Assembly (NCBI GenBank): GCA_048013815.1
Contig: CM106586.1
Coordinates: 12,276,001-12,340,000 of the forward strand
Direction of reading: 5' to 3'
Length of the DNA: 64,000 bases
Origin: Setoptus koraiensis
Taxonomy: Eukaryota; Animalia; Arthropoda
Shown here: positions 36,696-60,300 of the stretch, piece by piece
Position numbering within the stretch: the first letter of the stretch is position 1
Layout: each line of letters starts with the position of its first letter
Notes under the pieces: generated by a model
Databases searched by the model: none
What the model was told of the DNA's origin: nothing
Seen by the model: only the letters and a program-made list of their open reading frames with translations
Position numbers and translations under genes: made by a program

Positions 36696-39600
36696 TCATC
36701 GGACATGACATACGTTGAACTCAAGTGTTTCTAAAATGGGGGTTGGTAGTTTTGACTCCATAATGGATCTTGGAAAACGTCCTATACGCAAATATTCTAT
36801 GAGGCAAGAAATCATATTCACTAGGTCCAATGGTAACTCGGTCAACGATTTGTTGGCAGCACCCATTTGCTTAAAAACCGATCTTATATAATAACACATA
36901 TAATCAACAATAGTCACATTTTTTGTGTTTTGATACTGGTGAACAAAAGTAATCACTCCGTACATCAAGGGTATTGCATCTATAGTCTCACTTGATAATC
37001 TTGAAATTTTGGGCACTAGACCAGAGATGGCTTTGGAATATATGAATTTTGGCATCTGGGTGAGAATAAGTAAGAATAGTATTGATTCTAGGTGCTGGTG
37101 ATTGTTCGATATATTTGTTGTATAAACTTTTGTTAATGGATCGGACAAACCGATCCATTCAAGGTGGTTTGTAAGTTCAAACAACAGTTGACTATCATCT
37201 TGCCAATTATGACTACTCGAGGTGGGATTAAGTTTAGGAGAATCATTGTTGATGTCTGCAAGGTTAGATGTAGTGGGGTGACTAACGCGAGCGTTATTGT
37301 TTAGAGTGGTCAGCGTGGCGTCATTCAAGGTGTTTAAGCAACTGTAAAAATTTCTGGCTTTTGATCGACATTGAGTACTAAGACAATGAGCTATATTTGC
37401 ACGCATGATCTGCAGTTGTCCAATTTGAAGTATCGTTTCCAAAACAGTCCCTGTGAGAAATCGACTGCATTTTGAGACCAGATTGGCATGGTAGTGGGCG
37501 GAATCCTCCAAAATTGATTGCTTAGCTATGTTATTCTTCATCTCCACAAACAATGAGTCTAACGATTTTTCTTTTAGGAGAGCAGATGTTAGGAAATTGT
37601 CTAATTTTTGGACATTATCCATGATCATTGTAGAACAAACTTGATCAAAACCATTCAAACCTGCTGTTCCAATGCTCGCCTGAGGGTATTAGAGGGGAGA
37701 AACAATATCGGTGTAAAGATTTGAGAGTTTGATCATGGCGTTTTGGTGGCAATCTAGAATACTCTGAAGACTTACATTGATAAGGTCAAACAATTTCAAG
37801 TCTATGATAAATTCTTTCGTTTTACTATCATACCATGCGCTCATTTGATCATCATGTATAGTTGTCTTCGGACTAGTAACTCTCAAAGTTTCAGCAACAA
37901 GTCTTCCAACAAAGTTTGCGGACTGATCCACCTTTGCAAATGTCGGTATCGGTACTCGTTGAGATTGATAGACACTCTGCCAATCAAGCACTTTTTGTTT
38001 GGTATATGTATTACACTCTTGTTCAACATTAAATTTAATAATTCTTGACAACTCCTCTTGCCACATACGTAGACCATAAATGAAAACATAATCTTGTATA
38101 TATTCAAAAGATCGTTTATAACCATCCATAATTTTAGCAAGATTAATTAATTTACTGACTAATTCACTTGGTTTTGCCCTCGAGTTGAAGATCAATTGAG
38201 AATGAATGGCCTCTGCGGCTTGTTTGACTAGCTCTCGTCGGATACCATCTACAAGCAATTGTTTCGAGTCGATCTTAATGACACCGATAGCCGTTTCCCG
38301 CATCATAAGCATGCCTTCTGCATATAGAGAGATCTTGTAAGTTAAATGAGCCACCTCGTCCCTTTCTTCCAGGAATGCAAAATCTCTAAGATCGTTTAAT
38401 GATATCTTAGATGGCAGTTCGTTTATCTTATCTGTCTGCAGTGATATAATTTGAGCAACAAACAAAAACATGGTCTCAGGGATAATGTGCAAAACTTTCC
38501 TTATGTATGACACCAACTGGGATGAATAAAATTGTGACACGGACAATAAGTCAGGACTGTTTACTTGATTGATCCTAATTAGAGATAAGTCAAAAGCGGA
38601 AGCCAGCTTCAAAAAGGTGTATCTTATTTTTGCCACTTGACGAGGATCATCTCTGATTGCTTTTTGCATTTGTCTGGTAAAACTGGTATCCATTATCTCC
38701 CAGCCATAAGACAGGTCTCCAATCATTTGCAGTGTTACCAATGTATCCTCGCTGAGAGAAAGGTTTCGCATGATCAGTGTCAAGTTACGACAAGTATCTA
38801 ATACAAGTTGTTTAACTTGCAGGTTTGATTCCATTTGATAAATTTCCTGAACTTCTTTCATCTTACGTAGCAATTTTACGACATCCTGGCGATCGTGACT
38901 TCGGTTGGATTCATCAGTACTGAACTGCAATGACTTAAATTCATTTAGAATATCGTTGAAAATTTTTTCCAAGTTTCTGTTCTTTTCGACGCCCCTCATT
39001 ATTTGAACACCGGCAAAAATACTTTCGAGTTCATCAAGTAGTTCGATAGTTTCACTTTTCAATTTATTGATCCTAGTAGAATTAGAATCGAGCAGTTGTC
39101 TGTACAGTTCTCTGAAACTCTGTTCTAATTGAGCAGTATTTTGTAGCAATATGAATAGACTGTCCAGATTGACTCCAAGATTGCTACTCTGTACCAATTC
39201 TAGAGTAGTTTTGCATTTTTTTACCTGCCATTTATTGTTAGAGTGCGAATGCAACAAACTCCAACGTATTAGAATATTAGCCTCCCTGAGGTTGTTTAAT
39301 ATTTTAGTGGAATTTTCAAGGACGGAATCTAATTCTAGCCAACCTTCGCGAAGCATGGCCTGTATCTGAGGTGTGACTTTATCGAATCTATCATGGAATT
39401 TATTGCAAACGTGCCTTATGTTATCCACTTCCAAAGTATTGCATAATGCTTGTCTTGCGGCCTTGTACGGTTCCCAAGCTTCAATAAGATTCACAACACT
39501 ACCCATATAGATGCTGATGACCCAATTATCTGGAAAGAATCTATCAACTATTTCTCTCATTTTTGCGTATTGCATAGTAAGAATGTCAGGCACATAGTAC

Positions 39601-40379
39601 AATATCACGTAAAGCATAGACGCTTGTTGAGCCAGCGCAAAGGAACGGTGCTCGGGGTTAGGGAATGTGGTCACTATTTGATTGTATATATCATCTGATT
39701 GAAGTTTAGCTATAAGTAAATTGATCACTGCTTGATTGGCACCAGTGCGAGAAAAATATTTTTCCGGGTAGTTGGCTGGTCGTTTGCCAGTTTTTCTGTC
39801 GTAGCCAGTTGTCCTAAGCAAGTTGCTGGTGTCGTCTAAACTAGAGCCTGGTGCAGTTTTGAATGCAGAATAGCGGTAATAGCTAACAATGATTCTTTCT
39901 CGTGTCGGACCATCAAAGTTTCTGTCTACTACAAGCAGCATGAATCCTAATAAGAAATATGCCTCACATAATAGTTGACGACCATCAATATCTTGCAAAA
40001 CACTGTCCATGGTCTGACCAATGTAAGAGCCATCCTCCAAGTCTTCAATGAAAACATTCAAGTCAACAGAGTACCGATGAATGGATTCAAAGGTTAAATA
40101 GTAGCGAGTGACTATATCTAGATATGTATCACAGAATTCGGAGTCCTTTTGCTTAAGAGATGCATTGGATTCTATTTTGTTCTCTATAGAATCAGATTCA
40201 TTGAAGTAGCTGAAATCATTTACTATCTCCTTGTATAAATTGAACTCTGGCCTATCTGATCTAAACGGCGGTGGTATAATTTCACTGAGACGATAAAGTT
40301 CCGCGATGATGGCATTGCCTCTTGACACTATTTTGGCTAGAGAATGGCCACAAATATTATCACGGCCCAAGAAATTCAT
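36696..40379 (-). CDS. WASHC5: WASH complex subunit 5 (strumpellin); exons 40379-37776 and 37679-36696 (1195 aa)
   Basis: MNFLGRDNICGHSLAKIVSRGNAIIAELYRLS, RERIIVSYYRYS, RPANYPEKYF, MREIVDRFFPDNWVIS, FLKLASAFD, VSQFYSSQLVSYIRKVLHIIP, GLRMWQEELSRII; intron 37775-37680 GTAAGT...CAG, in frame. Confidence 0.97.
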
Positions 40380-41077
40380 GATCCTGGTATCATTCTATTT
40401 GGTGTCCCGCGGTTCTTTTATGTGGATAGTAAATTATAACTAGATTCTAAAATATCTAAGAGCATATGGTTGTTTCTTTGAGCAAAAAATAGGCCCAGTT
40501 CATATTGAAGATGTAAATCATGGCTTTTTGGTACATTTAAACATAGCATCGATGGCGTGCCTCATGGAAGCATTGTTATTGTTTGTGCGAGTGCAAACAG
40601 TAACGACCAAAAGGAATTGAAAGTGCCTTATAGAGTGAACAAGATTTGTATGAGCGAGCGGCCGTTAGGAGGCGTTTCAGAACTGTTTCAGTTGCAATTC
40701 AGCCTTTCAATGTACAGCGCCTGTCCTATTGGAAGCGACACACTGCGGTAAAGTGGATAAAAACAAAGTTCCAGACAAATGATTAAAATCAATGATAAAA
40801 TTGCATGGACAACAATTGCTTTGTTTGAAAAACCGCCAACACGAGAATCTATACAATGTAACTCGATCAAATTTCCGATTCTATCGCTTGTTATTTGTAC
40901 CGGTAAACGTTGATCCGTCCACATCAATATCATCTCTACTAAACATCATCATGTCGGCAACCGACTAGCGGCTTATTGATTGATATTAAAGTGAACAATT
41001 AATTTTAACTTGAATATTTTATCCGACAACTATTAATAAGTAAATTATATCATCAACGACATCATAACAAGTTCAAA

Positions 41078-42157
41078 ATGGAGAATAGTAAAAGCTCAAA
41101 CATTGGGGAGACCACTGGAAAGAAAATTGTTGACCAAAGATTAGAGAAATTTCTATCTATGCTTGAGAATTTGCCCCGATTATGCTCACCAACTATTTGC
41201 GGTACATTATCTATGAATGCAACAAAAAGTTCTACTGCGGGCCAGACTAAGAGTGGTCGTACGACCTTTGACCACAAAGACAAAAAGGCCTCACAACTTC
41301 AAATGACTTGTGAGGAGAAATTCGATTCTATCGTCGACATGTCTGTAGACAACAATCATACACCTGTTAGATTGGCTGACAATCAATTCTTTCATACAGA
41401 ACAAATGGACGACAACGATGAGTCTGAGTGTCAACAAGACAAAACATTTGAGTGGTCCATAGAGCAAGCTGCCACCCTATTTCCCACCAACATTACTGTA
41501 GATAACATATCTGACAACGGCTGCGATGTTGCCGACTTAGACTTGACTTGGCGAACTAAAGAAAACGAAGAGTTTTTCTCACAAAAAACCATAGCCCCGT
41601 CACCATGTCTCCAATATGCTACTTTTTCCTACTCTCAACCCCCGGAGACGCCAAGTAGACGTAAATCATCATTGTATAACACTAGTAGTAATGATACAAG
41701 TGATCCAAGCGATCCAAGTAGCCTTTACAAGACGACACCGACCACGACAAAGTCATCAAGTCAGACGTACTACTCTTCCTACACTGCGTACATCTCAGCT
41801 AATATTGACGAAGACAGTCTACAATCTGTCAATGATAAACTAGCAAATAATCACGTCGATGATTCTGACACTAATTCTAGGTTTTCTACGGATCAACAAG
41901 ACGACTATGACGTTGTTGATGGTGTCGGCGACTACGATACCAGTGGTCAAGAACTAGAATGTGATAATCAACTTATATTCTCACCCAGTGAAGGACCGAA
42001 CATGGGCCATAACTTTAGACTCACTATAAGCTCGCCACGCACTTTCGAAAATTTGTTTGAGCAGGAGAGTAAAATTCAACATAGCACTCCTAAGACGACC
42101 AGCCAAGATGTAGCTGCAAGTAAGCGTATCAGACCTAGACGTAGGATATGTCTATGA
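41078..42157 (+). CDS. BORA: Protein aurora borealis (Bora), 359 aa, intronless
   Basis: FEWSIEQAATLFPTNI and EEFFSQKTIAPSP match the conserved Bora motifs (FRWSIDQLA..P and EEFF....VPSP); the remainder is S/T/D-rich and disordered. Confidence 0.8.
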   Translation: MENSKSSNIGETTGKKIVDQRLEKFLSMLENLPRLCSPTICGTLSMNATKSSTAGQTKSGRTTFDHKDKKASQLQMTCEEKFDSIVDMSVDNNHTPVRLADNQFFHTEQMDDNDESECQQDKTFEWSIEQAATLFPTNITVDNISDNGCDVADLDLTWRTKENEEFFSQKTIAPSPCLQYATFSYSQPPETPSRRKSSLYNTSSNDTSDPSDPSSLYKTTPTTTKSSSQTYYSSYTAYISANIDEDSLQSVNDKLANNHVDDSDTNSRFSTDQQDDYDVVDGVGDYDTSGQELECDNQLIFSPSEGPNMGHNFRLTISSPRTFENLFEQESKIQHSTPKTTSQDVAASKRIRPRRRICL

Positions 42158-42284: not shown

Positions 42285-43775
42285 TTATTCAATCAGCTTT
42301 TTGATCACCCCTTCGAAAGAGACCAAAGTTGTGTCGCTTTTGAAATAACACAGCCTAATGAAATCTTCCGCCAAATGTTTATGATCTGCTGAATAAAATG
42401 CGCTAGGCGGAATACCTTGTAGCTTCTTGTTTTTTGATAACCAGCGTATAAATTTGTGGTCTTTGGTGGCACCCTGCTCTTGAGAGAAATCGAACTTCTT
42501 TGAAAGATCTGAAGTATTGGCCAACAGGAAGTATCCGGCCTCAGGAACAGTCGGCTCCATGTTCGCCTTTGACAATATCTCGACGACTCGATCGCGCTTC
42601 TGCTTCAAAGATGCTGCCAGAGAGGTCCAGTACGACTCTGGGGTGCCCATTCGGGCAGTCTCAATCTCAAAAGATTCCGCTACTGCCTCTTGCAACGGGG
42701 TAGGACAAACGTAGATGCAGTTTTGGTGTAAGAATTGCGCATACCTAATAAGGTCCGATGGTCCGTAACACCATCCCACCTTCCATCCAGTAACGCTGAA
42801 TGTTTTGCCAGCACTTCCGACAGTTATTGTCCTTTCCCACATGCCATCCAAACTAGCTGTTCTGATGTGTTCACCATCTAGGACTAGATGTTCATAAACC
42901 TCATCACTTAACACCAACAAATCGTTTCTCTTACAGATACCGGCAATACTTTCAAGTTCTTGTCGTGAAAACACCTTGCCCAGTGGATTGTGTGGATTGT
43001 TCAAAATGAGCATTTTAGTTTTGTTTGTTATCTTCGATTGCAGTTCATCCTCAGATAAAACCCAATCTGAGCTACTAGTCACTCCATCGCCTTTCTTAGA
43101 TTCTTTCTTCAGGCGGAGAGGTACAAACACGCATTTTCCTTGGGCCATTTTTACCATCGGCTCATAACAATCATAGTAGGGTTCAATTATAATGACCTCA
43201 TCTTCGGGTCCAATGAACGCATTGATAATGCAGTAAATGGCTTCGTAGGCTCCAACTGTCACCAGAACTTCTTTGTTTGGATCAACAGAACGATTCAACA
43301 ATTTCGAGTATAACTCACTTATGGCTTTCACTAGGCGAGGGTGTCCAAAACCTCTGGTGTACTGGTTTATCAAACAACTGCCCCCGGTGACAACTTTGGC
43401 CAGGCCCGCGGTAACATGATCCGGGTAGGCGGTAGGATAGTCTGGTAGACCCTGACCCATGTTCAAAGGCTTCGCTTCTGAAGCCAGCTGAGCGAACTCG
43501 ACCCACACCGATTCTTGTTCATCCTTGATTCTATCTGCTGGCACTAGTCTACTTCTTCCTGTACTTTTTAATTCGGTCATGATTGTTTGTCTTGAATGTG
43601 TATTGGTTGTCGCAAAATCTCTATGTTTATTGTGGCACGAAATTGGTAAGTTCTTCAGATTTTTGTTACATGCATAGCTATTATTGATGATCAAGGGCGA
43701 ATAGATTCTTGAATGTATTTTCGATTTGACCAAATTGTTTATTAGATTGGCACTGGCATTACTAGCTCTTATCAT
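42285..43775 (-). CDS. KYAT3: Kynurenine-oxoglutarate/glutamine transaminase (KYAT1/3 family) with probable mitochondrial leader, intronless
   Basis: SVWVEFAQLA, NMGQGLPD, NQYTRGFGHPRLV, VTVGAYEA, IIEPYYDCYEPM, LNNPHNPLGKVF, SDEVYEHL, TVGSAGKTFSVTGWKVGW, IRLCYFK. First ATG is at 43775 (the track start 43781 is GTG). Confidence 0.93.
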   Translation of the reverse strand: MIRASNASANLINNLVKSKIHSRIYSPLIINNSYACNKNLKNLPISCHNKHRDFATTNTHSRQTIMTELKSTGRSRLVPADRIKDEQESVWVEFAQLASEAKPLNMGQGLPDYPTAYPDHVTAGLAKVVTGGSCLINQYTRGFGHPRLVKAISELYSKLLNRSVDPNKEVLVTVGAYEAIYCIINAFIGPEDEVIIIEPYYDCYEPMVKMAQGKCVFVPLRLKKESKKGDGVTSSSDWVLSEDELQSKITNKTKMLILNNPHNPLGKVFSRQELESIAGICKRNDLLVLSDEVYEHLVLDGEHIRTASLDGMWERTITVGSAGKTFSVTGWKVGWCYGPSDLIRYAQFLHQNCIYVCPTPLQEAVAESFEIETARMGTPESYWTSLAASLKQKRDRVVEILSKANMEPTVPEAGYFLLANTSDLSKKFDFSQEQGATKDHKFIRWLSKNKKLQGIPPSAFYSADHKHLAEDFIRLCYFKSDTTLVSFEGVIKKLIE

Positions 43776-44238
43776 GTCCACTATGTTAACTAGCCGCTTT
43801 TAAACTCAGAACAACAAGTTAAATATAAACTTTGAAAGTTACGTTCTAGACTGTATGTTAGTATTGCAACAAAGTTGATTCCAGTGAAGCACCATATTTC
43901 GATGCATTCCAGCTGACACACCTGAAATTGGCAAGCTAGACTGTGGGTGGCGCACTATTTAAATAAATAAACTGTTAAAAGTTGTTAGGCGAAAGTCTTG
44001 TCGAACGAAATGCACGTAAAAACCCGTCTTTGGACGTTTGCACATATACTGTGGTTAACTCAAGTTTTTTGTATTTGTTGATTTATCGCTTAACGAGATC
44101 TTATCTGGCTGGTAACATGAGCTATTGTGCAATATCACAATTCTCTTTATACAATGATCAATATCAATGTAGCACGATGACCTAAAATTATATATAGGAC
44201 CAATAGTTGAGTTTCGTTGATTCAACCTTGTCTTGACG

Positions 44239-45567
44239 TCATGAGTGCTCTTGCGTCAATTTGGGACCATCTAAACAATTTGTACCACTTTCTATTTGCT
44301 GATCTGTGTTTGTTTCCCTCAATTTGAGACTCTCATACTGTCTCATGCTATGACTAGATTTGCCAAGGCCCAATTTAGGTAGGCCCTTATTGAGACCCTC
44401 CAATATCAGGCAGGCTTTGCAGACCTCCTGGCTAGATATGTAGCCACATTTGGTGCATTTAGTTTGATCGGGTATTTTCATTTTAGCCTCTGTACCCAAC
44501 TGTAATGACTCGCCGGACTTAATAATGTCTATAATGGAAGAGGGCCGAATTGATTCTATATCTTTAAGGAATTCTCTAGCGTGGCCTCTATATGAATTTG
44601 GAGCATAGATACATTCTGTAGAGAAATAGTCTAATTTCTTAAAGTGGGCATAAAGAACAATCTCTTTTTCGTATGTATACTTGAAAGGCTTGGCTCTTGG
44701 AATGGTGAATTCGCAGCTGCCTGAGCCATGTTTTTGTTCAGCTCCAGTTATAATGTCCATAGATCTTACAAGACGATTGGTGTCGCCACGAAGCAAATTC
44801 ATGAGTACTGTCTCTGCCACATCGTCTGCATTATGGCCAGTGACCATTTTATTGCAGCCCAATAAATGGGCGCCGCGATCTAATGCCTGCCGCCTAAACA
44901 CACCACATATTGTGCAATTATTTTTCAAGCCAACCAACTTGACTATTTTATCCATGGTCCAGCCGTACAGTTGCTCGTAGCTGAGTATCTTGAGTGGAAG
45001 GTCATATTGTATCTTGTTTCGTTCTACCGTTTTCAAACTATCGTCTCTGTATCCCGAAATTCCCTCATCTATTGACAGTAATACTAGTCTTAGTTGATAG
45101 TTGTGTCTGTCGTTGAGAAGTTTCATAATATGGGCCAGCACAGTTGAGTCTGTGAGTGGATGATGTGGTTGGTAACATGAAAAATAGATTTGTGATAAGA
45201 GGAGACATTAGAGATAGGACAATTGCTTCATTGAAGCCTGATAATGAGGGCCAACCAAGAGTTACACCAACCTTTTCCACCGCTGGCTCCAATAGCCACA
45301 TAGTCGTCAGGCTCGAATAGTTTGCACTCAACAATTGTCTCGTGTATCTCTCTTTCGAAACATTCGAAGAAGCATTCTTTACACAGTGCTTTACCCTAGG
45401 TTGTTATTTGGATTTAATGTATGACAGAATAACAAATTAATCATCTGGTTAGTAGGTTGTTAGGTCGGTAATGATAAAAATGGTAGCAATATTCGTTTCA
45501 GGTTTACATTTTTCGGCCTCCTCATGATTGGTCGAGCTGAAGCGCATCCATCACAGCTGATGACCAT
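44239..45567 (-). CDS. CTU1: Cytoplasmic tRNA 2-thiolation protein 1; exons 45567-45508, 45395-45272, 45149-44239 (364 aa)
   Basis: Splicing restores [15 protein letters not shown]...[16 protein letters not shown]; [53 protein letters not shown]; total 1095 nt, in frame. Confidence 0.96.
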
Positions 45568-47010
45568 TTTTGTTGTTGCTATTATTTGTTGGACCAAGCC
45601 GCAATCAATTGAGACTCGCTGCGATTAGTTGTGGAGCTGTAGGCTAATTAATTGATTGATGCTAATTAGACGGATTCATAGTTTTACTGGTTTCTTTTTT
45701 TTTGTCTTCTTTTCTTTTTCAAAATAAAGGACCACGTGACGCCAGAAGCTAGTCGATAATTCCAACCGGCACAGAAGCGCGGCTCTGTGCCAACTTTCAA
45801 TTCTGCGCATTTGAAGCGCGCTCATTTCTTTTTAGCTAGACAACTTGTCTAAGACAAGTTTCATATCCAGAGGGCGAAAGTTCATTTATTTGACGATATT
45901 TCACTCACTCTCTATCTATTCTCTTAGTGTCTCCATCTATCTAATTTGCAAATCTTAATCATCAATTTGAGACAATTCAATCAATCAACTTTTCACTCGC
46001 ACTCAAAGTTATGTGTACATGAGATGCCAATGTATCACTAGCCTGAAGTGAGAAGAGAGAATCTCATTTCATCAGCGATATTTTGTTTTTATTGTTTATT
46101 TGGCATTTGCTAATGTACTTGTTGCCACTTGCATTTAAAGCGTCTATGTTGGAATTAGTTTAGCCAACGAATCTGTCTAGTTTCTACTGGCTGCTCAATA
46201 ACTCTCTTAATCTTCAAGCACTCGATAGCAGATTGTCGATTGCTGGACAAATTACTGTGGCAATCTGATTGGGTCAGGCAATGATGGCATGCATTAGCAC
46301 TGTATAGTCACATGAAATCATATAATTTGACTCAAATGACACTTGACTGGCTAAAATATGATGATTAAGCACTATTATCTATTGGCAAACTGACAGTTTG
46401 CAGATTTTACAGTTGTCACATGGGCCTAATAGTAGAAAGTGACATTTGATATGCTCAAAGGAATCAATAGTAGATGTCTTGGTACATATTGCAATCAATA
46501 TCAATCTGAATCCGTATGTGTATGTGTAAATTGAAATTGTTGGATGATGAAATAACCTCGCTCTGTCTTGTAAATGTCGTTATAATTCCCAAGTCAGCAT
46601 CAGATAGCCAACAAGTCGGTTATTAATCTGGGCAAATGCAGTAATGATGATGACTCAGCAGCGTACTTGTTGCGCCAGAAATACTCAGACTGCAAGTAAC
46701 TGATATAGATGTCTGTTTGATATATTTGTCGCCTCACCAAACATCTCAAGCAAGCATCTCAAATTTACACTAATTACACTAATAGTTACTCTTGCTAATG
46801 AGCTGTCACCACGAACTGAACTCACTGATACAATCTAGAATCGTGCTGACTTGTCCATTTGATTTGATATCCCCCACTACGTTACACTATGTGACACTAT
46901 GTCTCAACTATCTATGTGTCAGTGATAGTAGAGATTATTGCTACCTATGCACTCGCTGGTCATGGTGTAATGTGCCAAAATTTTTGAATAGTGGTGCTAG
47001 CGACCGATGG

Positions 47011-47052
47011 TATATAAAGGGGCGACCTGGCCTGAGTAAAATCAGATTAGTT
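47011..47052 (+). promoter_or_regulatory. TATA box and initiator-like element of the LLTP gene
   Basis: TATATAAAG at 47011-47019 with ATCAGATTAGTT about 30 nt downstream; ATG at 47209. Confidence 0.6.
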
Positions 47053-47208
47053 TGAGGTTAGACATCAAACATCTAGTAGCATATAGTAGTAGTAACGTAG
47101 CTGATAAAATAGATTGATAGGGTATTCAAGTAACAAATTTCCGAGTAGTTAGTAATTAAGATTAGTTTTCTGCAAGCAGTTAAAATAACAGCAAACGATC
47201 AGATCAAG

Positions 47209-50200
47209 ATGAACGGCAAAGTTTTGCTGATCACCGTTTTGTCGTTCGCCTCATTGTGTTTGGCAGGTAAGTATCATGGAGAAAATTGTATTGATTTGAC
47301 ACGAATAAAACAACACGAGCCAGCGAATAATTGAAATAATAGAAGCGAACTGAATTTCAGTCAATTACAATTGAATCAAAGTGAAAATAGTTGCCATCAG
47401 CTCAAGTCGAATAGTGCAAACGTAAAGATCAACACAGTGCTAATGTGACCGCTTCCCATTCTCTCATATTTCCCTCACCTGAAAAAATGTCGATCACGCC
47501 GCCTCAACCGCAATCGTCGATCACGCCGCCTCAACCGCAATCGTCGATCACGCCGCCTCAACTGCAATCGTCGGTCGTGCAACGAACGAAACGTTCGAAA
47601 CAACCGCCACCAACAAAACAACCGCAATCGTCAATTTAATTAATCAATTAATTAACTCCAATGACCGAACGCAAACAATTCAACGAACGAAACAGTGCCG
47701 ACAAACACAAAGAACGAACGCTGGTCCAACAATGAGGCCTATGTGCCGGCCAAGAGATCGTCGAACGACGTCGAGAACATCCTGTCGAGATGGTGCCAAT
47801 CGTCTGACATGAGCACAAACGTTTTGACCGAATCATTCAAGCAATTGACTGGCTCATTGAGCTATGCCTCGTCGCGCCAATTGGACCAATTGACCGATGA
47901 CATCATTGTGAAAGAGCACTTCTGTCAAAAGTACAACAAACAATCGTATCCTGAAGACTACAGCAACGAGGATCTAATTAAAGACGTCTACTTGGACGCC
48001 CTAGTTGCTAGCGAGTCGGACGACACAACAGAGCAATTGGTGCGCGCCATTGACACTGGCAAAGTGGACAAAATTCGTGCCAACTATTATCTGACTTTGT
48101 TGGCCGTTAGTTACGATGGTGAAAACAGTCAGACAACATCGTCTAAAAACAGCGACAACGATATTGCACAAAAATTGACCCAGTCATTGTTGAGCAGCAA
48201 AAAGAGTGGCGATTCTCTGAAGGACACCATTGAGCGTCAGAAGATGTTTGCCGCCACATCGGTGTGGTCGAAAAAGATCCAACAACAACAACAACAACAA
48301 CTGTCGTCCATGGACAGACAAAAGATCGAGCAATTGGTTGAGGCCATCGTTGAGCGTTACATCAAGCCAGTGAGCCCAATGACCTATTCAACATCTAGCA
48401 AACAAATAGCAGATCGCGACGCCGCCTTGAAGGCCGTGGCCAACATTCCCGCCTACGCGTGGCCCCAAAAGACCGTGCAATACGTGCTGGATTTGGCCTT
48501 GGACAAGCAAGAATTGGTGAGCGTTCGTCAGAGTGCCATTGAATCGTTGAAATACGCATCGCGCCAACAAGACCAACAATACAAGATTCATCAACAATTG
48601 AAACAATTGGCCTTGTACTCGCAAGAGCAACCGATTGAGGTGAGAATTGTCGCCTACCGTCACCTAGTGCCAACCATTCATCAATTGGTGAACAGATTGA
48701 GCGACTTGGACGAGCTAGTGAGATACATCAACGACGAAACAAAGGACAACAAGGACGTTCAATTTGTCGCCTATGTTGTGTCGCATTTGCAGAATGTGCT
48801 CAAGAACGCCGACAAGAAATATTTGGACGTGCTGAAAAAGGAGCGCCCTCAACAATTGGCCCAAATAAAGGTGGCCAGCAAGCGCATGCAAAAGTATGAC
48901 GATTTGCGCAAATACTCGCGCAACTTCCAAATGGAACAATCGCTGGCCAAATTGGACACTGGCCTCATTTTGGACGGTGACATCATTTATGAGCGATCGC
49001 AATATTTGCCAAAGGTTATGCGCTTGAACGTGTCTATGCCCGTTATGGGCAACACCGTCGAGCTGGTCGAGATTAGCATTCGCCAGAATCACATGCAACA
49101 AGAGCTTCTGTCCATTTTGAAGCCGTTGCAATCGACCAAGATCAACATGGAGTCCATTGACAACGTGGTGTCATCGATCAAGAAGGCCGCCAGCGACTAC
49201 GAGCGCCAACAACAGCAACAGAAACAACAAACTTCCAACAAACAAAGCCCCCAATTGGACCTGAGCATCAAGATGGACGGCGTGACCGTTATGTACGTCT
49301 CGCTAAACGACTTCAAGCAATCAGCGCAACAACAACAAATGAACAAGCACCGTCTCACCAGATCGGCGAGCCGCTCCAGCGACTACTCGCACCAGCGCGG
49401 TCAGCAGTCGTCGTCGGAGAGCGTTATCGAGGATTTGCTGAAGCAACTGAAAAAGAGCATCCTGTTCAACCGTGGCGTTCACTTTCATTTGAACAAACGC
49501 GTGGGCGGCCTCATCGACTTGCAAACAGTGCTAACGGGTAGCGTTCGCGCCGAATCAAAGGTGCGAACTCTCAGCGAGGGCATGCACGAATTGGTGGCCA
49601 AATTTGAGCCAAGATTCGCCTTTGAGTCAGTGATTGGTCTGGCCAAATTCGATACGAAAAAGTCAGCCAAAAAGTACTTGCAGCGCATCTCTACCGAATC
49701 GAGCCTCGGCCTGAGAATGAAATACAAACAAGACGAACTGATTGAGATATTCATCGAGTTGCCCATGGAAGAGATGGAACTGTTTAGAGTTGAGTCGCAA
49801 CTGGTGGAACAAGTAGGCGAATCGTCCACTGGTCTGCCAATTTACAAGTATGCCATCGACATTGAGGACATTGAGGGCGACGATTACGACTATCACCGTC
49901 GCACCAGCGACTACAACACCGTTGACGCAACAACCACATCGACAAACAAAAACAAGAACAACAACGACAACTACGATTACGACAGCGCCTCCCAGTGGCA
50001 ATTGAAGAGCGACTCAGAGAAGGACAAAATGACCCGCTTCTATGGGCAAGACATTGAGAGCTTCTACGGCGACTCAATGAAGAGCATCAGAGAGCGTCGC
50101 AACGCCAACAAACAATCCGAAATGCGTGAACGTTTCGACATGCCCCAACAGGTGAGCCAATTGACCGGCCTGAAGGGTCGCGTTGAGCTGGCCGCATCGC

Positions 50201-53200
50201 CAAAGGACCTGTCCGCTATTATGCGCATTGTTGTCACCAAGACCGACCCCAAAATGACCGGTTTCCGCATGCTGGTGCAAAGCGACAAGCTGAGCGCCAC
50301 TAGCAAGGCCTACACAGTTGCCTTCTCGACGCCGTCGTCGTCGTCGCGATCCCAACAATACCAGCGTCAGATTCAATTGCGCCTAGTGAGCGACATCAAA
50401 TCAGACATGAAGTCGCTGAAGGGCGAACTGAGCGGTCCCGTATTCGACACAATGCGCTTCTCGGTTGCCGCTAAGGACGACGGCCGCAAGAAATCGCTAG
50501 AGGTCGAGCTGTCCGCCGACGGCAAGAAGCCCTGGTCAACCAAGGCCGAAATTGGCGCCATCGAGCAACAACAGCAACAAACCAGCGACAGATCGCCAAG
50601 AACAGGTGAACAACAACAACAGCAGCAGACGTACAAGACTTACGCCCGTTTGTCGCTGCCACAACAATCGCAACCAATGGAAATTGTCGGCCTAGTGTCA
50701 GTGTCGTACAAGCCAAAGACCTCCATCTTCTACGAGATCAAGGTGCCTCAAGAACTGATCGAGATGTTCATGGACGACGACACACCGTCGTACAACAACA
50801 ACAACAACAAGCAGCAGATCGCCAGCGACAGACAAACCATCAAGGGTAGACTGACCATCAGCAGCATCGACAACACCAACGCCAACAAATACCAACAACA
50901 ACAACAACAGCAGAGACGTTCGCGTTCGCGCGACCTCAAGAGCAACTTGGCCAGAATGATCCACGACGGCCAAGATGTCAGCATCACCAACGACGTCGAC
51001 GTCAAGCTGGCCAGCCTGTACTACAAGAGTCTCACTCACGTTGCCTACAAGCCGCAAGAGGACCAAGTTGTGCTGTCGCACACCGTCGACTACCTGTCCA
51101 GCCAAAACAAAATGGAGCAATACCGTTTCGATTTGGAGCTGCAAAACAAGCAGCACTCGCAAGAGAGCGAACAATCGTTTTTGGTGCAACAATTCAACAC
51201 TAAATACCCAAAATACGACAGTGTGTTCAAGGTGCAACACAAGACCAAGACCGAGAACAGAAACAGCCAACAACAGGCGGCCCACTTCATTGCCCAATAC
51301 CTGTACCCTAGCGACAGTTACGTGCAACAGGTGAGATATTATGTCAAGTCGGGCGACAAGGTGCCCAACGTGCAACAGCGTCAACAGTTGATGAGCGCCA
51401 TTGAGTACGAGCACCAGGTGCAATACGCCTCAATGAAGGATATGCAAGTTGTGGTGCGCGTTGCCGCTGCACCAATTGAGTTTGAGCGCGAAATCACAGT
51501 TCAAATTCAATCGCAACAACAACAGCAACAACAATCGCAACGCAACAAGCGCCAACAATCGATCGCGTCGCTCATCAGCGAACCCGACACCATCAAGGCC
51601 CAAGTTGTGGTGAAGAACATGAGCGGCAGCAGAAAGCAGCAACAGACCGGAAGTGGCCGCTACCAGGCCGAACGCGAGGATTTGAACGCCATGATCAAGC
51701 TGGACCAATACTACCAGACCAAGGGCCAGATCAGCGTGCTAGTGAAGGCCGAGGCCGACAACAAGAAGCACTTCATCGAGTTGCGTCACGACATGCAGCG
51801 CAAGCAGCAGCAGCAGCAGCCAAGCGAGCAATGGGACAACTACTTCCGCTTGTCCATTGACAAACAGCAGCCAATTGTGTTTGCGTACACAGTTCGCAGC
51901 AACACCAACACCAACAGCAACTACCAACAACAACAGCAACAGCGCCAACAACAATCCAGACTGATCGATTACGTCATTGAGGGCTCGTACAAGGACAGCA
52001 CCACGGGCGACAGCAGATCGGCGCCAGTTCGCGCTAGCGTTTCGCTCGATTATGCCAACGGTTTCGAGTTTGCGCAACAACTCGACATTCCCGAGCGCCA
52101 AATCAAAATGAACGTGTACGTGTCCGAAATGGAGCAAGTGGCCAAGCTTGAGCTGGACACGCGCGCCATCAAGGCCAAGTTCGTGGCGGACACCAAGCAG
52201 GACAACAAACAGGAAATGATTGTGATGGTGTCGTACGCGCCAGAGCGATTCCAGCACGAGACTCGCGTCGTTTACAACGAGCAGCGCCAACTGGTGGCCA
52301 TCCAAAGCCAGCAGCAAAAGCAGGGCCGTCAGGTGTACAAGCTGACGTCGCAATTGAGCTCGCCCATCGACATGCAACAGTTTGTTGAGCAATACAAACA
52401 ACAGCAACAACAAATGAAATACAACAGCAACAACAAGCGATCGATCTACAGGGGCTACAAGCGCTCCCTGCCGGCCATCGAAATGAGACAAAACCAAGAG
52501 AACAGCTATGTGCGATATCAGTACAACGAGGACAAGTCGCAGTTCACAATGGAGTTCTCGCCTAGCGAAAGCAAATTCTTGATCGAGCTGAAAGACGCTG
52601 AGCGTGAGATTTACCACAAAACGATGGGTCAGTCGAGCGACAACAGCAACAAGCAGTGCCAGACCATTGAATTCCGTTCGCAAACAAGCCAACAGCAGCA
52701 AGTGGTGTACACCGTCGACATTGAGGCCCCAATCGGCGAGCGTTGCCAGTCGGCTACGAAGGCGCGCATCGTGTATCCGTCGTTTTACAACGTCGACATG
52801 CTGTACGAACCCACGAAGAACATCTTCACCGGTCAGGCGAAGAAGGGCGCCAAATTTGAGCGCACCGTGCAACATTTCAGCAAGCGCGATCGTTCGGGTT
52901 ACGCGTATCCGCAATACGTGCGCAAAATTGTGCAATTCTTCGACGACAAACTCGCCGAACAAAAGATCGTTGTTGACGCACAACAATACCCACGCGTCAA
53001 GCTGGCCATGGAAATCCAAGAGGCCGGCCAAAAGAAGTTCGCCACATTGGGCGCCGACATTTATCTGAGCAGCACCGGAAGTAAGAGCAACCAACAGCAC
53101 GAGTCCACGCTGGCGTGGCAAGTCGCTGACCGTTACACGTCGGAGAGTCGCTTTCAGCAGACGGCGCGCGCGCTCATCCTGCAATCTCAACTGAAGGATC

Positions 53201-56200
53201 TAGTCAAGCGCGAGCGTTACGCAATGGACGCATCGTTGTCGCGCAACCAACAGGACAAGTCTCAAGTGAGCATTGACACCCCCATGTACAAGGGCGACGT
53301 GTCGTTTGAGCCAGCGGAGGAGCGTGCCCGCTTCAACATGCAATCGTCGGCAATGTCGTCCGACAACGACAACTCGTGGCAATGGAGCTCGTTCGTGGAC
53401 AGACAGCAACAGCAACAATCGCAGGGCAGATACGTGCGCCGCGCACAAGCCCAATACAAGAGCAAGTACGAGCAACAGAGCCACAATTTTGAATACAACC
53501 CCTACGACGAGAATGTCAAATTCTCGTCGCAGCGCCAGCCAACAAAATACGCAAACAAAAACAACAAACACTTCTGGTCAGTCGACGGTGACCTGAGCAG
53601 CTACCGCCAGCAAGCGGACAAGCTGAAGAAGCGCGCCCCACGCGACGCCTTCGCAAAGCCATCTTACGTCAACATCAAGCACAACGACGACTTTGAGGGT
53701 CAGTTCGCCATGAAGCCGTACGCCCAAGACCAAGACCAGGATCAGTACGTGCAACTGACCATGAAGCGCCGCACCTCGCCGTTCCAGTTCGAGACGCGCC
53801 TCGTGAAACGCGACACCTCTAGCGCCGGTCAATCGCGCTACAACGTGTTTATGAAGCACATGAACCGCGACGAGTTGATCGCTCTAGTGGAGGCCACCCT
53901 CGAAAAGAAACAACATTTGCAGGCGGAAATCAAGCAATTGAAGAGCGGCAAATACCCAACGAGCAGCTTTGATTCATCCTCCGAAAACAGCTACAAATTC
54001 AACGACCAATCCGACGATTACGACAGCAGCGCCGAGCGACAAGCCCGCGTTCACTTCAAGAGCGACAAGCACGGTCACGCAACCTGGGAACACTCGTGGA
54101 ACCAGCAGCCGAAGGAGGCGCGCGAGCGCCAAGACCGATTCAAGTTCGACTTGAACCTGAACAAGAACAACAAGTTCAGCGAGCTGAAGCACAAGACCGA
54201 GTTTGCGTTGTCGCGCGACCTCGACTCGGACTACTCCGACTCTGCCGACTACAACAGCAACTACAACACCAACTACAACACCAACAACAAGCCACAGAAC
54301 CGAGATTCTGACTACTTCGCCGGTAACTACGCCAAGGGCAAGCGCGCCTCTAAAATCGTGAAGCGCAACGCCAATTACGCCAATTACGCCGATTATGTCA
54401 TGCAAAACGCAAATTTGAATTTGCGCTCCAGCACCCAATACAACAACCGCGACTTGTACAACATCGAGGCCGACTACAACGAGCTGTCCAACAGACAGCA
54501 GCAGCAGCAGCAATACAAGCAGCGCAGCCAGCAAGCGGCCATGCCGAGCAAGATCCGCGCTTCCGGTTTCGGGTACGAGACCAGCGTCAAGTATGAGCCA
54601 AAGTCGTTTGTGCACTACTCGATGGCCACCCCGAGCAAGACGCGCCACACTGCGCGCTACCTGTTCCCGACCAAATCGGCACAACAACAACAACAGCAAC
54701 AACAACAGCAACAACAACTCGACAATTTGCACCAGTTCCGCGTCAGATCCACCGATCAACACGACAACGAAATCTATCAGTTTGAGGCGCAATTTCCCGC
54801 CTCAGACGAGTACATCATGGACAGCGAGCGCGATTACGACTGCCTAGACAGATCGGCCGATTGCACCCAAAGCCAGATGGCGCCCACTAGCGGCAACAAG
54901 AAGCCGACCTCGTTCAAATACAACGACGTGTACGGCAACAAGATGCAGTTCGGCATGGACCTGGCCAGCACAAGCCAGCAAAAGTACGTTGTGGTGGAGG
55001 TGCTCGAAGCCAGCAAGGGCTACGAACATTCGACCAAGTACAGCCAGTCGGCTGAGCAGCAAAAATCGAACGCGTTCTCGTTCAAAACAGTGACCAAATC
55101 ACAGCGATTCGGTCAGATCATGAGTGTCGACATTGAAAAATTCAGCGACAAACAGGGCTCGCTGCGTTTCATGACACCAATCGTGAAAGGTGAGCTCACG
55201 AGCGCCAAAACTAACTCGTTCCGTCAGCTAAAATTGCGTTTGCAAAACGCGCAACCCGGCCAACAGCAAACCAAGAAACAATTGAAACAATTGCAAGCGT
55301 TGTTGGGTGCGAGCGCCTTCATTGAGCGTGCCTTTGAGCACCAATTCTTGCACGAAGCAGAATTGTTGGCCAATTACGACGAGCAATATTACAAGATGAC
55401 CGCTCAGACATTGTCACAGGGCCAACAATTGGTTGATTTGTTGCTAGAGACAAAATTGCGCCAACAAACACAAATGAAATTGTTGACAAAACAATCGTCG
55501 TTTGACATTAAATTGGACCAACAAATGCCAAAATTGGACGTGCACATCGACTACAAACAAAAGCGCGCCCAACACGACACCACCATCTACCTGAAGGACC
55601 AACAATTGGGCCAGTGGTCAGTGGACACGCGCACCCGCTATTTGGGCCAGCAAGTGTTCAGCGTCAGTGGCGACTACATCCAATGCCAGCATTCGAGCCA
55701 CCAACAGCAACAGCAACAACAACAGCAAACTAAATGCAGATCGCAGCTCATCGGCTCGTCCAACAACGACCAATACGAGTTTGTGATCGCCTTTGACCAT
55801 CTCGCCGAGACCTTTGTGGCCAAACTGACCAACAAATACACCAAACAAGTGCACTCGTTCACCATCAACAGCGGCTCAACAGCGCAATCGCAATCGAGCG
55901 CGCTCAACATGGAATACACACTCAAATCTGACATGACGCAAGAGATCATTTACCAGGGCGAGGCTCGTTTGCATTTAAACGATTTCGCTCTAGCACGTGC
56001 GCTCATCTCATCACAGCACCGCTCGTACAGCTCGTGGCAGCAAAAGCAGCCAAGCATGCCAAAAGAGAGCCAATTGAGCTTTGTTGTTCGTCCCCAACAG
56101 CAAGATCAGCGAAAGGCCATCAGCGTCAAATATCAACCAAAGAGCTCGTTTGAGCTGACCATCACCAGCGAGCCACATAAATTCTCGCACCAAACAAAGG

Positions 56201-57276
56201 CCGTCGTGCAACCAATGAACAGCAACCAAAACCAAAACCAATACCAAGATGACCAAGACCAATATGACCAAACACAAACCACAATGCAAACCCAACAACA
56301 ATCGCAACAATCGCAACAAAAATGGCGCGATCTGCTGAAACAGGTCAAGGTGAGCTCGAGCCAATCGTGCAAATATTACAAGTGCCAACAACGCGATTAC
56401 ATGACATACGATTTTGAGCTCAACTACGACCAAGACAACAAGACACAAATGTCGCTCAAGACGACCCAATCCACAATGGACTTTGAATTTTTGCCACAAA
56501 ACAAACAAACCCATCTGAGAGACGGTCTGTTGATTGTGTCAACACCCACATACCAACACACACAACAATTCTCGCTAGACACTGAGAAGTACGAGCGTCT
56601 AAACATGCATTTGACTCATTCCATTAAGCCAAAATATCAGCATCAAAAGTCACAAATTTACCAATTGGATGCGGACATTTACGCCAACAACAAACAATCG
56701 TCGAGCGTTGTCGTGCGTTCCCCAATCTCTCAATATCAGATGCAATTTCCGTCGGCATTCTCTGCAGCAATCATTCCAAAAATGCTACAAACTGTCATGT
56801 AAACACTTAGTTGATTAGTCAAGTGTGATGATTGTCTCAAGCGGACAACAATGTCAGCATAACAACAAATAAACAAACTACACAGCTAATGTAATAATAC
56901 CCACAACTCACCGTGCCCAATCTCACTGTTATTAATTACCTCACTGATGCCCAGCCGCTGATTACCATGCTAATCAACCGATACCCGGCCGCTAATTACG
57001 TGCCCATCAACCGATACCCGGCCGCTGATTGAGATGCTAATTAACCGATGAGCGAACGATTGAGATGCCAATTAACTGATGAGCGAGACACCGAGCGACA
57101 GGTTGAGCGATAGTTGCAATAACGATAATTTAGTTCTTTTGTCGCCTCAGTGGCGCCACAATTGAATTGAATGTGATTGTCTGACTAACATTTTCTCTCG
57201 CTCGCACAGGCTCCCTCGCCTGATTGAGCCGCCCAATCAGAGACAGTCTCTAGTAATTAGTCGCCAATTAGTGTGA
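47209..57276 (+). CDS. Large lipid transfer protein (vitellogenin/apolipophorin superfamily) precursor, ~3075 aa; exons 47209-47266, 47696-56798, 57210-57276 (unspliced alternative stop at 56802)
   Basis: Exon 1 encodes a signal peptide (MNGKVLLITVLSFASLCLA), followed by GTAAGT; phase-compatible acceptor at 47695. LLT helical-domain and C-sheet/DUF1943-like segments (LKAVANI, VRQSAIESL, IEVRIVAY, VAYVVSHLQN, RKYSRNF, DIIYERSQYLPKVMRLNVSM...VEISIR). The final intron has a CTAAC branch point and CACAG acceptor, and the joined CDS is in frame. Subfamily unresolved. Confidence 0.82.
47490..47573. repeat. 27-bp tandem repeat x3 in LLTP intron 1
   Basis: tcgatcacgccgcctcaaccgcaatcg repeated three times. 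Confidence 0.9.
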
Positions 57277-57365: not shown

Positions 57366-60300
57366 TTAGTGCTGCAGAGAGGCCAGTTTGCATCCGTGCA
57401 GCCACTTGATGATGCGCGCGTTCTTCTCCACTATGGAGCATTGGTGATCGTCGAGCGCGGACAGTGTTGCGCCACAATATTGCTCCAGATTGCCTATTAC
57501 CACTATATCACTAGTGTTGCCATTGACGTCGTCATGGTTGTTGGGGTTATCACTTGTCGTTTCGGGCCGGTGCTGCTCGAACTGGAACGGATGTTGCGCA
57601 ATGCCGGCAGTTTGCAGTTTGCCACAATGGGCGCCAATGTCGCTGTTAGTTGTGGCTGCCGGACACAGAGTGAAATTGTCCGACTGCTTCAAGTTGCCAG
57701 CGCTGCTCGCCAGTTTCCGGCACGATCCTTCCACTTGTTGTCTGTGTGCGTGTGCGTGTGTGTGTGTGTGTGGATATCAGATATCGGGCAGCGGGATTAA
57801 AACAAACAAACAAACGGTCAGAGAGAAATTGTTGGCAAACGGTCATTAGTGAACGTGATTGGCTTTGGGCAATCTCGTCTTCGTTGTGATTCAGCGTAGC
57901 ACTTGTTACTACTAATTGTTGCCTGCACTGAATCGCGGCGTATTGGCATTGTTGTTAGACAACACCCGGTTGTTGTTGTTGTTGTTGCCGTGATTGCTTA
58001 ACGTTGTGTTACGTAACGGGTGTGCTGTGCCGGCCCGCGACGCAATGATTGATTGATTGATCGATCGACCGTGGGGACACTCGCTCGCTCCACTCACCAA
58101 TCTCTCACTCTCTGGCCAATCTCGCTGGCCCTAATGAACTATGGCTCGTTGAGATTATCAATTTTGCATCAATCTCTGGCAGGCAGGCAGGCCGGCCGGC
58201 TACTCTGTCCACTGCCGTTGGTGTCTCTCAGCAGCAGCAGCAGCAGTAACTAAAGTCGCTAACTAAAGTCGGTAATTAATGACCTACAGGTACGGCCACA
58301 CAAGCGTAATCAATCAGCAGTCACTCACTGGCTCAAGTGGCTCGCTCGCTCACACACAACCACTCATCGCAGTTGACTGACCCAAATTATAATTATTATT
58401 TAAATTAGACGAGGCTGCTGCCTGTTCATGGCATCAAATGTAATTACCTTTTGTCTTGATTGTCCAATTTTTTCCTATCGTTTATTGTTTGCATGGCCAC
58501 CGTGGCCGTTGATTGGGCCGCTTGTTGTTGTCGTTGTTGTTGGTGTTGCTGCTGCTGCTGGCGCTGTTGGTGTTGTTGTTGTTGTTGCTGTTGGCGCACA
58601 TTTGAATAATCCGATTGGCGTGATTTGCCGTTATTGTTCTCTCGTTGATGCTCGTTATCTTGCTGCGCAATGGCCGCGTTCGTTGTCGATGTTGGCGTTG
58701 AGTAACAGCGACCAGGGGCTCGGTATTTGCCACTGTAAGTGATTGCGCACTCCTCGGCATGGAGACCATTGTTGCCGGAAGTGTTAGTCATCACCTGTTG
58801 CTGCTGCTGTCGCTGTGGTTGTTGTTGTTGTTGTTGCTGATGTTGCTGATGCTGCTGTTGCTGCTGCTGTTGCTGATGCGCACTGGGTAGTTGGTGCGCA
58901 CTTTGTGGTTGTTGCTGCTGTTGGCGCAGCTCAATCAGATTGACATAATCACCGTGATCGTTGTCGAAGGGCAACAACAGCAAATTGTTGTTCACATCCT
59001 CCAGCGAGTCCACCGCGGATGCGCCGCACCAATCACAGCAATGCTCTCGATTGTTGTGACCAGTGTGCACTCGCTTGTAAACAAGACACTGCTTGTTGCG
59101 CATCGTTCTCCTTGAGGGCACCACCGGCGGCTTCACCTGGCCACCGTGCCTTATGGCAGCCCGTTGACAGTGCCCGCCGAGCGACAGTGCTGACGGGCCG
59201 GCACTCACCTGTCGGGCGTTGTTTTGCTGTTGTTGTTGTTGCTGCTGTTGCTGCTGCTGTTGTCGTTGTTGCTGCTGCTGCTGCTGTTGTTGTTGTTGCA
59301 ACAGTGACGCAATCCGACAGCAGGCAGACCAGGCTTGCGCATTGTTGGTCGGCGCTCTGTCACTGTCACTGCTGCAGCCACCAATACCGTTATCATTGTA
59401 ATTACCGGTGCTCATGCCGGCAGCAGCGCTGATGGTTGCGTCATTGCTAAGCAGCATCGCAGCCGTGCCATCGTCGGCATTGGCTGCTGCTGCCGCTGCA
59501 CAGGTAGCCGCGACAGGTGATTGGCGCCTACACAGTTGGTGTGGCTGCCGTTGGTGCAACATATCATCGCAGTCGGCAGTGCCGTGGCCTGTGTCTGCGC
59601 CGCTGGCCTTTGTTGTCGTTGTTGCTGTTGTCGTTGTTGCTGTTGTCGTTGCTGCTGTTGTCGTTGCTGCTGTTGTCGTTGCTGCTGTTGTCGGTGTAGT
59701 TGCTGTTGGCATGGCTTGCGCTGGCAGCGAGCCGGCCCAGCTTGTTACGCAAAACGGGCTACACATGTCGCTATTGTTGTTGCTGTTGCGCAACAGGTTG
59801 CCGGGGTTGCAGTGTAGGTCAGCGGCGGTGGCACAGTTGGCGTGGATGTTGTTGCTGTCGCCGTTGGCTTGCCGCTGCAATTTGAAGCGAGCATCACTAT
59901 CGACATCACAATCGCTAACAGTATTGGCATTGGAGGTGGCCGTGTTGCCGTTGTTGATATTGGCCACTTTATCACCGCTGCCAGTGACGTAATATGAAAC
60001 GTCGTTGTTGTCGTTGTTGTTGCCGCTGTCGCCGTTGCTGCCGGCGTCAACAATGACAGGCCCTCTAACAATGTCATCTGCATCCTGTTTTAGTTTTGCT
60101 TTTTGTAGTCTCAGTCTGTGATGGGCACTGTCGCACAACAGCGACACACCGCCGCCATCCATGATCCATTTGTTGTGAGAACCCGTAATTACATCCATGC
60201 CATGTTGCCGCCGAATGATTGCATCCTGGCAAGACCGTGTTGCCGCATTCTGTTGGCGCAGTCGCTCGCTGGCGCCGTTTTCCTGTAGCGGCCGCTGCGT

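Follow-up and report, generated by a model that had tools for sequence, protein, structure and literature searches.

We analyzed a 64,000-nucleotide stretch of the genome of the eriophyoid (gall or rust) mite Setoptus koraiensis (GenBank assembly GCA_048013815.1, contig CM106586.1, positions 12,276,001 to 12,340,000 of the forward strand; hereafter the window, numbered from its first letter). A gene at 47209–56802 on the plus strand encodes a protein of 3,054 residues, and the analysis confirmed that this is a presumably secreted member of the apolipoprotein B/apolipophorin family of large lipid transfer proteins (LLTPs) that has neither the beta-barrel at the N terminus (known as the N-sheet) nor a C-terminal vWD domain.

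The gene begins with a TATA box read from the sequence (TATATAAA, 47011–47018, plus strand), 33 nt upstream of an initiator-like A (TCAGAT) at 47044; TATA boxes lie at similar distances in the orthologous loci L006, L007, L008, and L013. The initiator-like motif and the start of the 5' untranslated region, also read from the sequence, occupy 47041–47059 (plus strand, ATCAGATTAGTTTGAGGTT). These 19 nt are identical in Fragariocoptes setiger (L006, about 828–846), although the two proteins are only 39% identical, and may be a conserved core-promoter or 5' untranslated element. The coding part of exon 1 (47209–47266, plus strand, 58 nt, ATG at 47209), seen in the sequence and in spliced contigs, consists of a hydrophobic 19-residue putative signal peptide, MNGKVLLITVLSFASLCLA, plus one nucleotide, and ends in phase 1 as TTGGCAG/GTAAGT at 47266/47267. 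In exon, phase, and pattern it is homologous to its counterparts in Halotydeus and F. setiger. Intron 1 (47267–47695, plus strand, 429 nt, phase 1) is of the GT..AG type, with the AG at 47694–47695. Exon 2 (47696–56802, plus strand) carries the remaining coding sequence, 3,034 codons from 47698 and the stop. It is stop-free over 9.1 kb and belongs to a single open plus-strand frame, 3,045 codons long, that spans 47665–56799. Read by eye, the junction codon G/TG gives Val, and the next residue is Pro. All searches, alignments, and folds were made on exon 2 alone (from 47698), and residue numbers below are exon-2 numbers.

Transcription was examined by placing Logan contigs from four public runs on 46500–50500. 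Spliced contigs from three runs and three studies (X1, X2, and X11) skip exactly 429 nt (47266 to 47696, GT..AG), and their 5' ends lie at 47066, 47059, and 47066, about 15–22 nt below the initiator-like A. No contig from the four runs covers 46500–47035 or intron 1. The phase 1 joint and the intron length given in a preliminary description of this DNA, made from the letters alone, are thereby borne out; its remark that the intron is largely tandem repeat is not, as the only repeat found by TRF, a 27-nt unit present 3.1 times at 47489–47573, covers 85 of the 429 nt. Some X11 contigs, at 48257–48347 and 49207–49971, touch polyglutamine (polyQ)-coding stretches briefly and then run into unrelated sequence; these are low-complexity cross-matches and not alternative splicing. 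Between the gene and a variant of it in run X1 we counted 23 synonymous and 5 non-synonymous differences, which points to purifying selection. The gene is thus both expressed and under purifying selection.

The missing barrel could in principle be an annotation artefact, with the barrel encoded by missed upstream exons or by an alternative first exon. Contigs are unable to prove a transcription start, and in Halotydeus, Tetranychus urticae, and similar relatives the barrel is spread over three exons. Because the contigs of three independent assemblies all end shortly downstream of the initiator-like motif and carry no sequence from beyond it, further 5' exons are nevertheless strongly disfavored, and the next upstream genes lie on the other strand. 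The nearest of these encodes a PP-loop/zinc-ribbon protein (44242–45207, minus strand), followed by an aminotransferase gene (42288–43799, minus strand) and by genes for a BORA-like protein (41009–42154, plus strand) and strumpellin (37692–40394, minus strand), all four housekeeping neighbors. The presence of the BORA-like and strumpellin genes fits a compact, gene-dense arthropod genome. On the other side, an open reading frame of 1,693 residues at 58444–63525 (minus strand) converges on the LLTP gene; it has no Pfam match at E ≤ 0.01.

Domain architecture of the protein

An AlphaFold2 model of residues 1–1150, based on 25 aligned relatives, has a mean predicted local distance difference test score (pLDDT) of 72. 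Residues 23–400 are all helical, and strands appear only from residue 408 on. The helical part (47764–48897, plus strand; 22 helices, pLDDT about 80) was recognized as the LLTP alpha-helical domain from the model, VIA-align superpositions, and BLASTP, and it begins about 22 residues into the mature chain. When the model was searched against the PDB with Foldseek, the ten best matches were all LLTPs (apoB100, lipovitellin, honey-bee vitellogenin, and MTP). VIA-align superposed model residues 15–862 on lipovitellin (1LSH_A 296–1070, Z 26.0), 17–920 on the beta-alpha-1 region of apoB100 (9bd1 317–1073, Z 26.6), 14–849 on MTP (6i7s_G 296–866, Z 18.8), and 14–948 on honey-bee vitellogenin (9enr_A 410–1285, Z 18.3, with 18.3–18.6 overall for the honey-bee protein). 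The protein thus has the two-layer alpha-helical domain of the large lipid transfer (LLT) module, superposing on 1LSH, 6i7s, and 9bd1, and has no barrel in front of it.

In BLASTP, residues 21–707 match residues 48–634 of P0016, a barrel-less protein described below, and residues 87–702 match residues 350–886 of the Halotydeus protein. A profile of four eriophyoid sequences, run against 1.8 billion representatives, shows the same offset as the superpositions: those long full-length LLTPs that it matches from about profile position 250 are matched from their residues 440–490. PF01347 was not matched even at E ≤ 10 when the exon-2 protein was searched against Pfam in 700-residue pieces. A tblastn search with four barrels (N-sheets, from an Orchesella apolipophorin and the two vitellogenins of this genome) against the window and loci L006–L008 returned chance matches only, all with E > 0.4. 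In the whole 48.8 Mb genome, PF01347 and an apolipophorin-type barrel profile (A4) match only two vitellogenin loci. The lack of barrel-like coding sequence in the window, in L006–L008, and in the genome outside the two vitellogenins argues further against missed barrel exons. It also bears on gene fission, in which the function of the barrel would be supplied in trans by a separate polypeptide. A fat-body fragment of honey-bee vitellogenin (fbVg) was earlier described as being without the N-sheet, a reading questioned in PMC12214520; if that description is right, the parts of an LLTP can exist apart. Here, no stand-alone barrel gene was found, as both profiles match only inside the two vitellogenin open reading frames, and we regard fission as having only the slimmest chance of being correct.

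Behind the helical domain lie the C- and A-sheets of the lipid cavity (residues 408–1149, 48919–51144, plus strand), the second feature of the LLT module that the protein retains; they are defined by the model strands and aligned to lipovitellin up to its residue 1070 and to honey-bee vitellogenin up to residue 1285. The first half of the C-sheet matches PF09172 (Vit_open_b-sht/DUF1943; residues 405–548, 48910–49341, plus strand; E 1.2e-13, 51.5 bits, cut-off 23.7). This is the sole LLTP Pfam domain found in the protein, and the match at the gene was repeated in a six-frame search of the genome. It emerged only in the 700-residue pieces: the whole 3,034-residue chain gave nothing except a sub-threshold match to Emfourin, which was rejected. 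The remaining about 1,900 residues (51145–56799, plus strand) form a Q-rich, Cys-poor, mostly antiparallel beta tail with no Pfam match; Gln makes up 13% of the residues of the protein. An AlphaFold model of the last 1,100 residues consists of beta-hairpins at a pLDDT of 56. Among the Foldseek matches listed for this low-confidence C-terminal model, only apoB100 entries (beta-belt) reach probability 1.00, and matches to teneurin, with a TM of about 0.06, are meaningless. The mature chain therefore keeps the helical domain, the cavity-forming C- and A-sheets, and a long beta-rich tail.

No vWD domain (PF00094) was matched in the exon-2 protein even at E ≤ 10, in a search that does find VWD in the vitellogenin on contig C1 and in the barrel-less protein P0017. 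The C-terminal model, with its pLDDT of only 56, likewise matched no vWD fold, and the 3,034 residues contain 10 Cys. DUF1081 (PF06448) has no match in the protein at E ≤ 10 and none in the genome, the genome search being one whose control genomes cannot show matches for this family. A hidden Markov model built from the C-terminal 800 residues of mite LLTPs that bear the barrel and vWD found no match in the protein; its alignment is poorly anchored, and this null carries little weight.

These results bear on what the preliminary description had proposed from the letters. The absence of the barrel holds: there is no PF01347 match, from the first state of the profile or elsewhere, the model shows helices from residue 23 on, its beginning falls on residue 296 in lipovitellin and MTP and on residue 317 in apoB100, and the transcript contigs add no upstream exons that could encode a barrel. 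The absence of vWD stands as well, with no match in the C-terminal region or any other part of the chain. The proposal that the helical domain follows soon after the signal peptide is upheld by structure and by less diverged relatives, but not by sequence, where PF01347 fails.

The chain contains nine RxxR motifs, five of them directly after polyQ runs (residues 552, 965, 1073, 1282, and 1911; 49351–53440). The motifs at 552, 965, 1073, and 1282 lie within or just past the folded part (1–1150), three of the four in or at low-confidence loops. The first, R-L-T-R (residues 552–555, 49351–49362, plus strand), follows a polyQ run within a Q-rich, disordered loop that belongs to the C-sheet region (pLDDT <50 over 549–578) and is conserved in six eriophyoid sequences, reading R-N-T/A-R in the five others. 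A second basic site, RRSR (residues 1073–1076, 50914–50925, plus strand), lies in a loop of low pLDDT (1060–1079), and its RRS (1073–1075) is invariant in four aligned eriophyoid sequences. Both RxxR sites that the inspected alignments reach (552 and 1073) are conserved across eriophyoids. The loops at 552–555 and 1073–1075 are candidate convertase sites, and the protein may be cut at one or two of these conserved RxxR/RR loops. Such processing would be comparable to apoLp-II/I cleavage, but the first site lies in an insertion found only in eriophyoids.

The same motifs could be read differently, as belonging to a yolk protein, i.e., a vitellogenin substitute cut at several polyQ-RxxR loops into subunits stored in the egg and taken up in bulk or by a route other than the vitellogenin receptor. 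The five polyQ-linked motifs in low-confidence loops and the two conserved basic sites would agree with this, and the loss of a receptor-binding N-sheet would suit a tiny animal whose ovary lies against the gut. The transcript is, in addition, recoverable from several runs coded under organisms other than that of the likely source assembly. The evidence from the phylogeny and from the rest of the genome, given below, points away from yolk.

Relatives and the origin of the barrel loss

Eriophyoid proteins are the closest: those of F. setiger (39% identity) and Aceria tosichella and a number of metagenomic or Logan sequences. The layout of the Setoptus gene recurs at the F. setiger locus and at L007, with a TATA box, a signal-peptide exon with a phase 1 GT donor, an intron, and a giant exon. 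In L008 and the fragment P0031 the signal peptide leads directly into the helical domain, whose start (LKQWC...SFKKL) is conserved, and L008 has an in-frame stop before the ATG. The barrel is absent in every eriophyoid orthologue with a readable N terminus. One Aceria tosichella entry, P0007 (UniRef A0A6G1SKJ2), is named 'Nuclear factor of activated T-cells 5' (NFAT5); it is an orthologue from about residue 570 and has an unrelated N terminus. Apparently it is a chimera created in transcript assembly, or else it was misnamed.

In LG+C20 trees the eriophyoid clade falls inside an acariform apolipophorin-like clade, together with Halotydeus and Tetranychus (Shimodaira-Hasegawa-like approximate likelihood ratio test [SH-aLRT] 99), on a stem branch of about 2 substitutions per site. 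In a 29-row tree the acariform clade stands apart from the insect and collembolan apoLp and the insect and mollusc apoLTP outgroup rows, and the two vitellogenins of the genome branch outside all of these. The protein is hence placed with apolipophorin/apoLTP-type proteins rather than with vitellogenins or MTP, and it is not a member of the vitellogenin clade.

The nearest full-length relatives with a barrel are Halotydeus destructor KAI1290052.1, an 'Apolipophorin-like protein' of 3,922 aa, and Tetranychus urticae XP_015790080.1 (LOC107366951, 4,016 aa). The helical domain, the C- and A-sheets, and a long beta tail are common to all three proteins. Both relatives have the full barrel (PF01347 1–590), DUF1943, DUF1081, and VWD, whereas the Setoptus protein is without the barrel, DUF1081, and VWD, falls short of them by about 900 residues, and is Q-rich and far more diverged. 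Exon 1 of the Halotydeus gene ends GCAG/gt in phase 1, and its exon 2 starts TT-CCT, giving Val-Pro, the same as at the Setoptus junction (G/TG-CCG); in T. urticae, too, the signal-peptide exon is short. The Halotydeus barrel occupies exons 2 and 3 and the beginning of exon 4, which continues into the helical domain with no intron at the domain border; mere skipping of exons is therefore excluded as the way in which the barrel was lost. Since Halotydeus shares the signal-peptide exon, the intron phase, and the Val-Pro junction, we infer that the barrel was lost by an in-frame deletion. The eriophyoid gene would descend from a barrel-bearing acariform apolipophorin-like gene whose intron 1 and exon 2 start were retained, and, judging from the comparison, roughly 270 barrel codons and two introns would have been removed within the coding region.

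Complete barrel-less proteins are also found outside the eriophyoids. P0016/P0154 (2,916/2,919 aa; ERR10899966), P0021 (2,825 aa; JGI 3300010198), and P0017 (3,677 aa; SRR32069682) come from metagenome or transcriptome contigs. Each has a signal peptide (MELRLAL...) resembling that of Halotydeus and, within 25–35 residues of it, PF01347 from profile position 276–301, continuing to 590; these are the less diverged relatives whose alignment starts inside the profile. P0016 and P0021 are also without vWD; P0017 keeps DUF1081 and vWD. All of these proteins are much less diverged than the Setoptus protein and are not Q-rich. At L012 and L013, too, the helical domain follows directly on the signal peptide, and there are in-frame stops ahead of the ATG; L013, a genomic locus, has no introns and a TATA box of its own. 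The trees join P0016 and P0021 to barrel-bearing Halotydeus as its sisters (SH-aLRT 93–94). Approximately unbiased (AU) tests disfavored both a common origin of every barrel-less form in one clade (p 0.0165) and a clade of eriophyoids with P0016/P0021 (p 0.0125); the groups were named after the tree was seen, and the long eriophyoid branch is involved. As far as these sequence trees can tell, the losses in eriophyoids and in P0016/P0021/P0017 were probably independent.

The contiguity of signal peptide and helical domain in L008, L012, and L013, each with an in-frame stop before the ATG, is the last of the observations that speak against an annotation artefact. Together with the spliced contigs, the strand of the upstream genes, and the barrel searches, it leaves that explanation already largely refuted, and we rate its probability as very low.

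LLTP repertoire and the function of the protein

The LLTP repertoire of the 48.8 Mb genome comprises two vitellogenins with barrels, one MTP (C1, 14.046 Mb), and the present gene. PF09172 occurs at just three loci, there is no PF06448 locus, and the eriophyoid profile found no paralogue of the gene across the genome; the gene is therefore the sole apolipophorin/apoLTP-class (apoB-class) LLTP of this genome. The C1 vitellogenin has PF01347, PF09172, and VWD. The second vitellogenin, of 1,911 aa (C2:14681016–14686700, corresponding to L009:2999–8731), has relatives that include an Aceria tosichella 'Vitellogenin' and Halotydeus 'Vitellogenin-5'. A Pfam protein scan of it gave PF01347 only, to which the six-frame genome search adds PF09172; it is without VWD. 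Its eriophyoid relatives (about 1,500–1,600 aa, including the Aceria tosichella vitellogenin) have PF01347 and PF09172 only, and Halotydeus-type vitellogenins keep VWD. Eriophyoids would thus seem to have dispensed with vWD in two separate classes of LLTP.

These data make a role in yolk unlikely: the genome retains two vitellogenin genes with N-sheets, and the tree groups the protein with apolipophorin/apoLTP-like proteins, not with vitellogenins. We consider it very likely that the gene encodes an expressed and selected LLTP of the apoB/apolipophorin/apoLTP class that lost its barrel by in-frame deletion and acts as a lipophorin-like carrier, loaded and taken up without an N-sheet. The protein would still scaffold a lipoprotein particle in the haemolymph. 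The N-sheet of vitellogenin is assigned to receptor binding (PMC12214520), the N-sheet of MTP recognizes apoB, and the apoB region in contact with MTP includes the N-sheet of apoB (PMC5538283). The contact between MTP and apoB initiates lipoprotein assembly. Given these assignments, loading, assembly, and uptake would have to use other surfaces. Of the possibilities named in the preliminary description, a reduced lipid carrier with a different uptake route hence remains the best reading, as judged from fold and family, and a yolk protein has become the less likely one.

A carrier would resemble the insect apolipophorin II/I, apoLTP-II/I, and human apoB100, which are likewise giant secreted LLTPs in which an amphipathic beta region comes after the LLT module; the Setoptus protein differs in having no N-sheet, no DUF1081, and no vWD. 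With lipovitellin (1LSH) and honey-bee vitellogenin it shares the core of helical domain, C-sheet, and A-sheet, but vitellogenins encode an N-sheet and the Setoptus gene encodes none.

In crustaceans, LLTPs have taken on the role of clotting proteins. A comparable fate here, in which the LLTP scaffold was kept in a repurposed secreted protein that does not handle lipid (e.g., a salivary, cuticular, or clotting protein) while the lipid-transport machinery of N-sheet, DUF1081, and vWD decayed, would suit the extremely long stem branch, the Gln content, and the disappearance of three Pfam-recognizable modules, and one bug protein among the matches is named 'venom apolipophorin-like' (P0167). Against this, the cavity-forming C- and A-sheets are confidently predicted and match lipovitellin in superposition, and purifying selection acts on the gene. 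The genome, moreover, has kept MTP and no apoB-class LLTP other than this one, which argues that a lipoprotein pathway still runs. We therefore hold repurposing to be distinctly improbable, even more so than yolk, and return to the lipid carrier.

Several observations weigh against a carrier defined in this way. The length of the eriophyoid stem branch and a helical domain too diverged for PF01347 to recognize by sequence leave room for a shift in function, and the proposed role is deduced from fold and family. A very diverged small domain may hide in the poorly modeled C-terminal 1,100 residues. The signal peptide was identified by eye. Finally, Logan contigs give no true 5' ends, and a rare alternative upstream start may exist.

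In the literature open to our search we found no paper on a genetically barrel-less LLTP or on eriophyoid LLTPs; in the genome paper on Aculops lycopersici, vitellogenin occurs only as part of a lipase domain's name. The nearest precedent is the questioned report on the honey-bee vitellogenin fragment. Beyond the carrier role, we put forward a broader and more tentative proposal, which we hold at somewhat less than even chances: that the N-sheet is dispensable for an apoB-class lipoprotein, that it was excised at the same border at least twice and perhaps three times in acariform mites (in eriophyoids, P0016/P0021, and P0017), and that assembly and uptake of the eriophyoid particle are independent of the barrel.

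The absence of the barrel gives a means of diagnosing eriophyoid LLTPs, which are overlooked or wrongly named in current annotation, as with the orthologue filed as 'NFAT5'. More generally, the gene shows that a part thought essential to the LLTP family can be lost. As an expressed and selected sole apoB-class member in a genome that keeps MTP, it is a ready-made deletion experiment, which lets one ask whether the helical domain and the C/A cavity are sufficient for a protein to be lipidated, secreted, and taken up. That several mite lineages apparently lost the barrel at one and the same domain border suggests that it is a separable module, and the finding is relevant to the streamlining of genomes and proteomes among some of the smallest arthropods.

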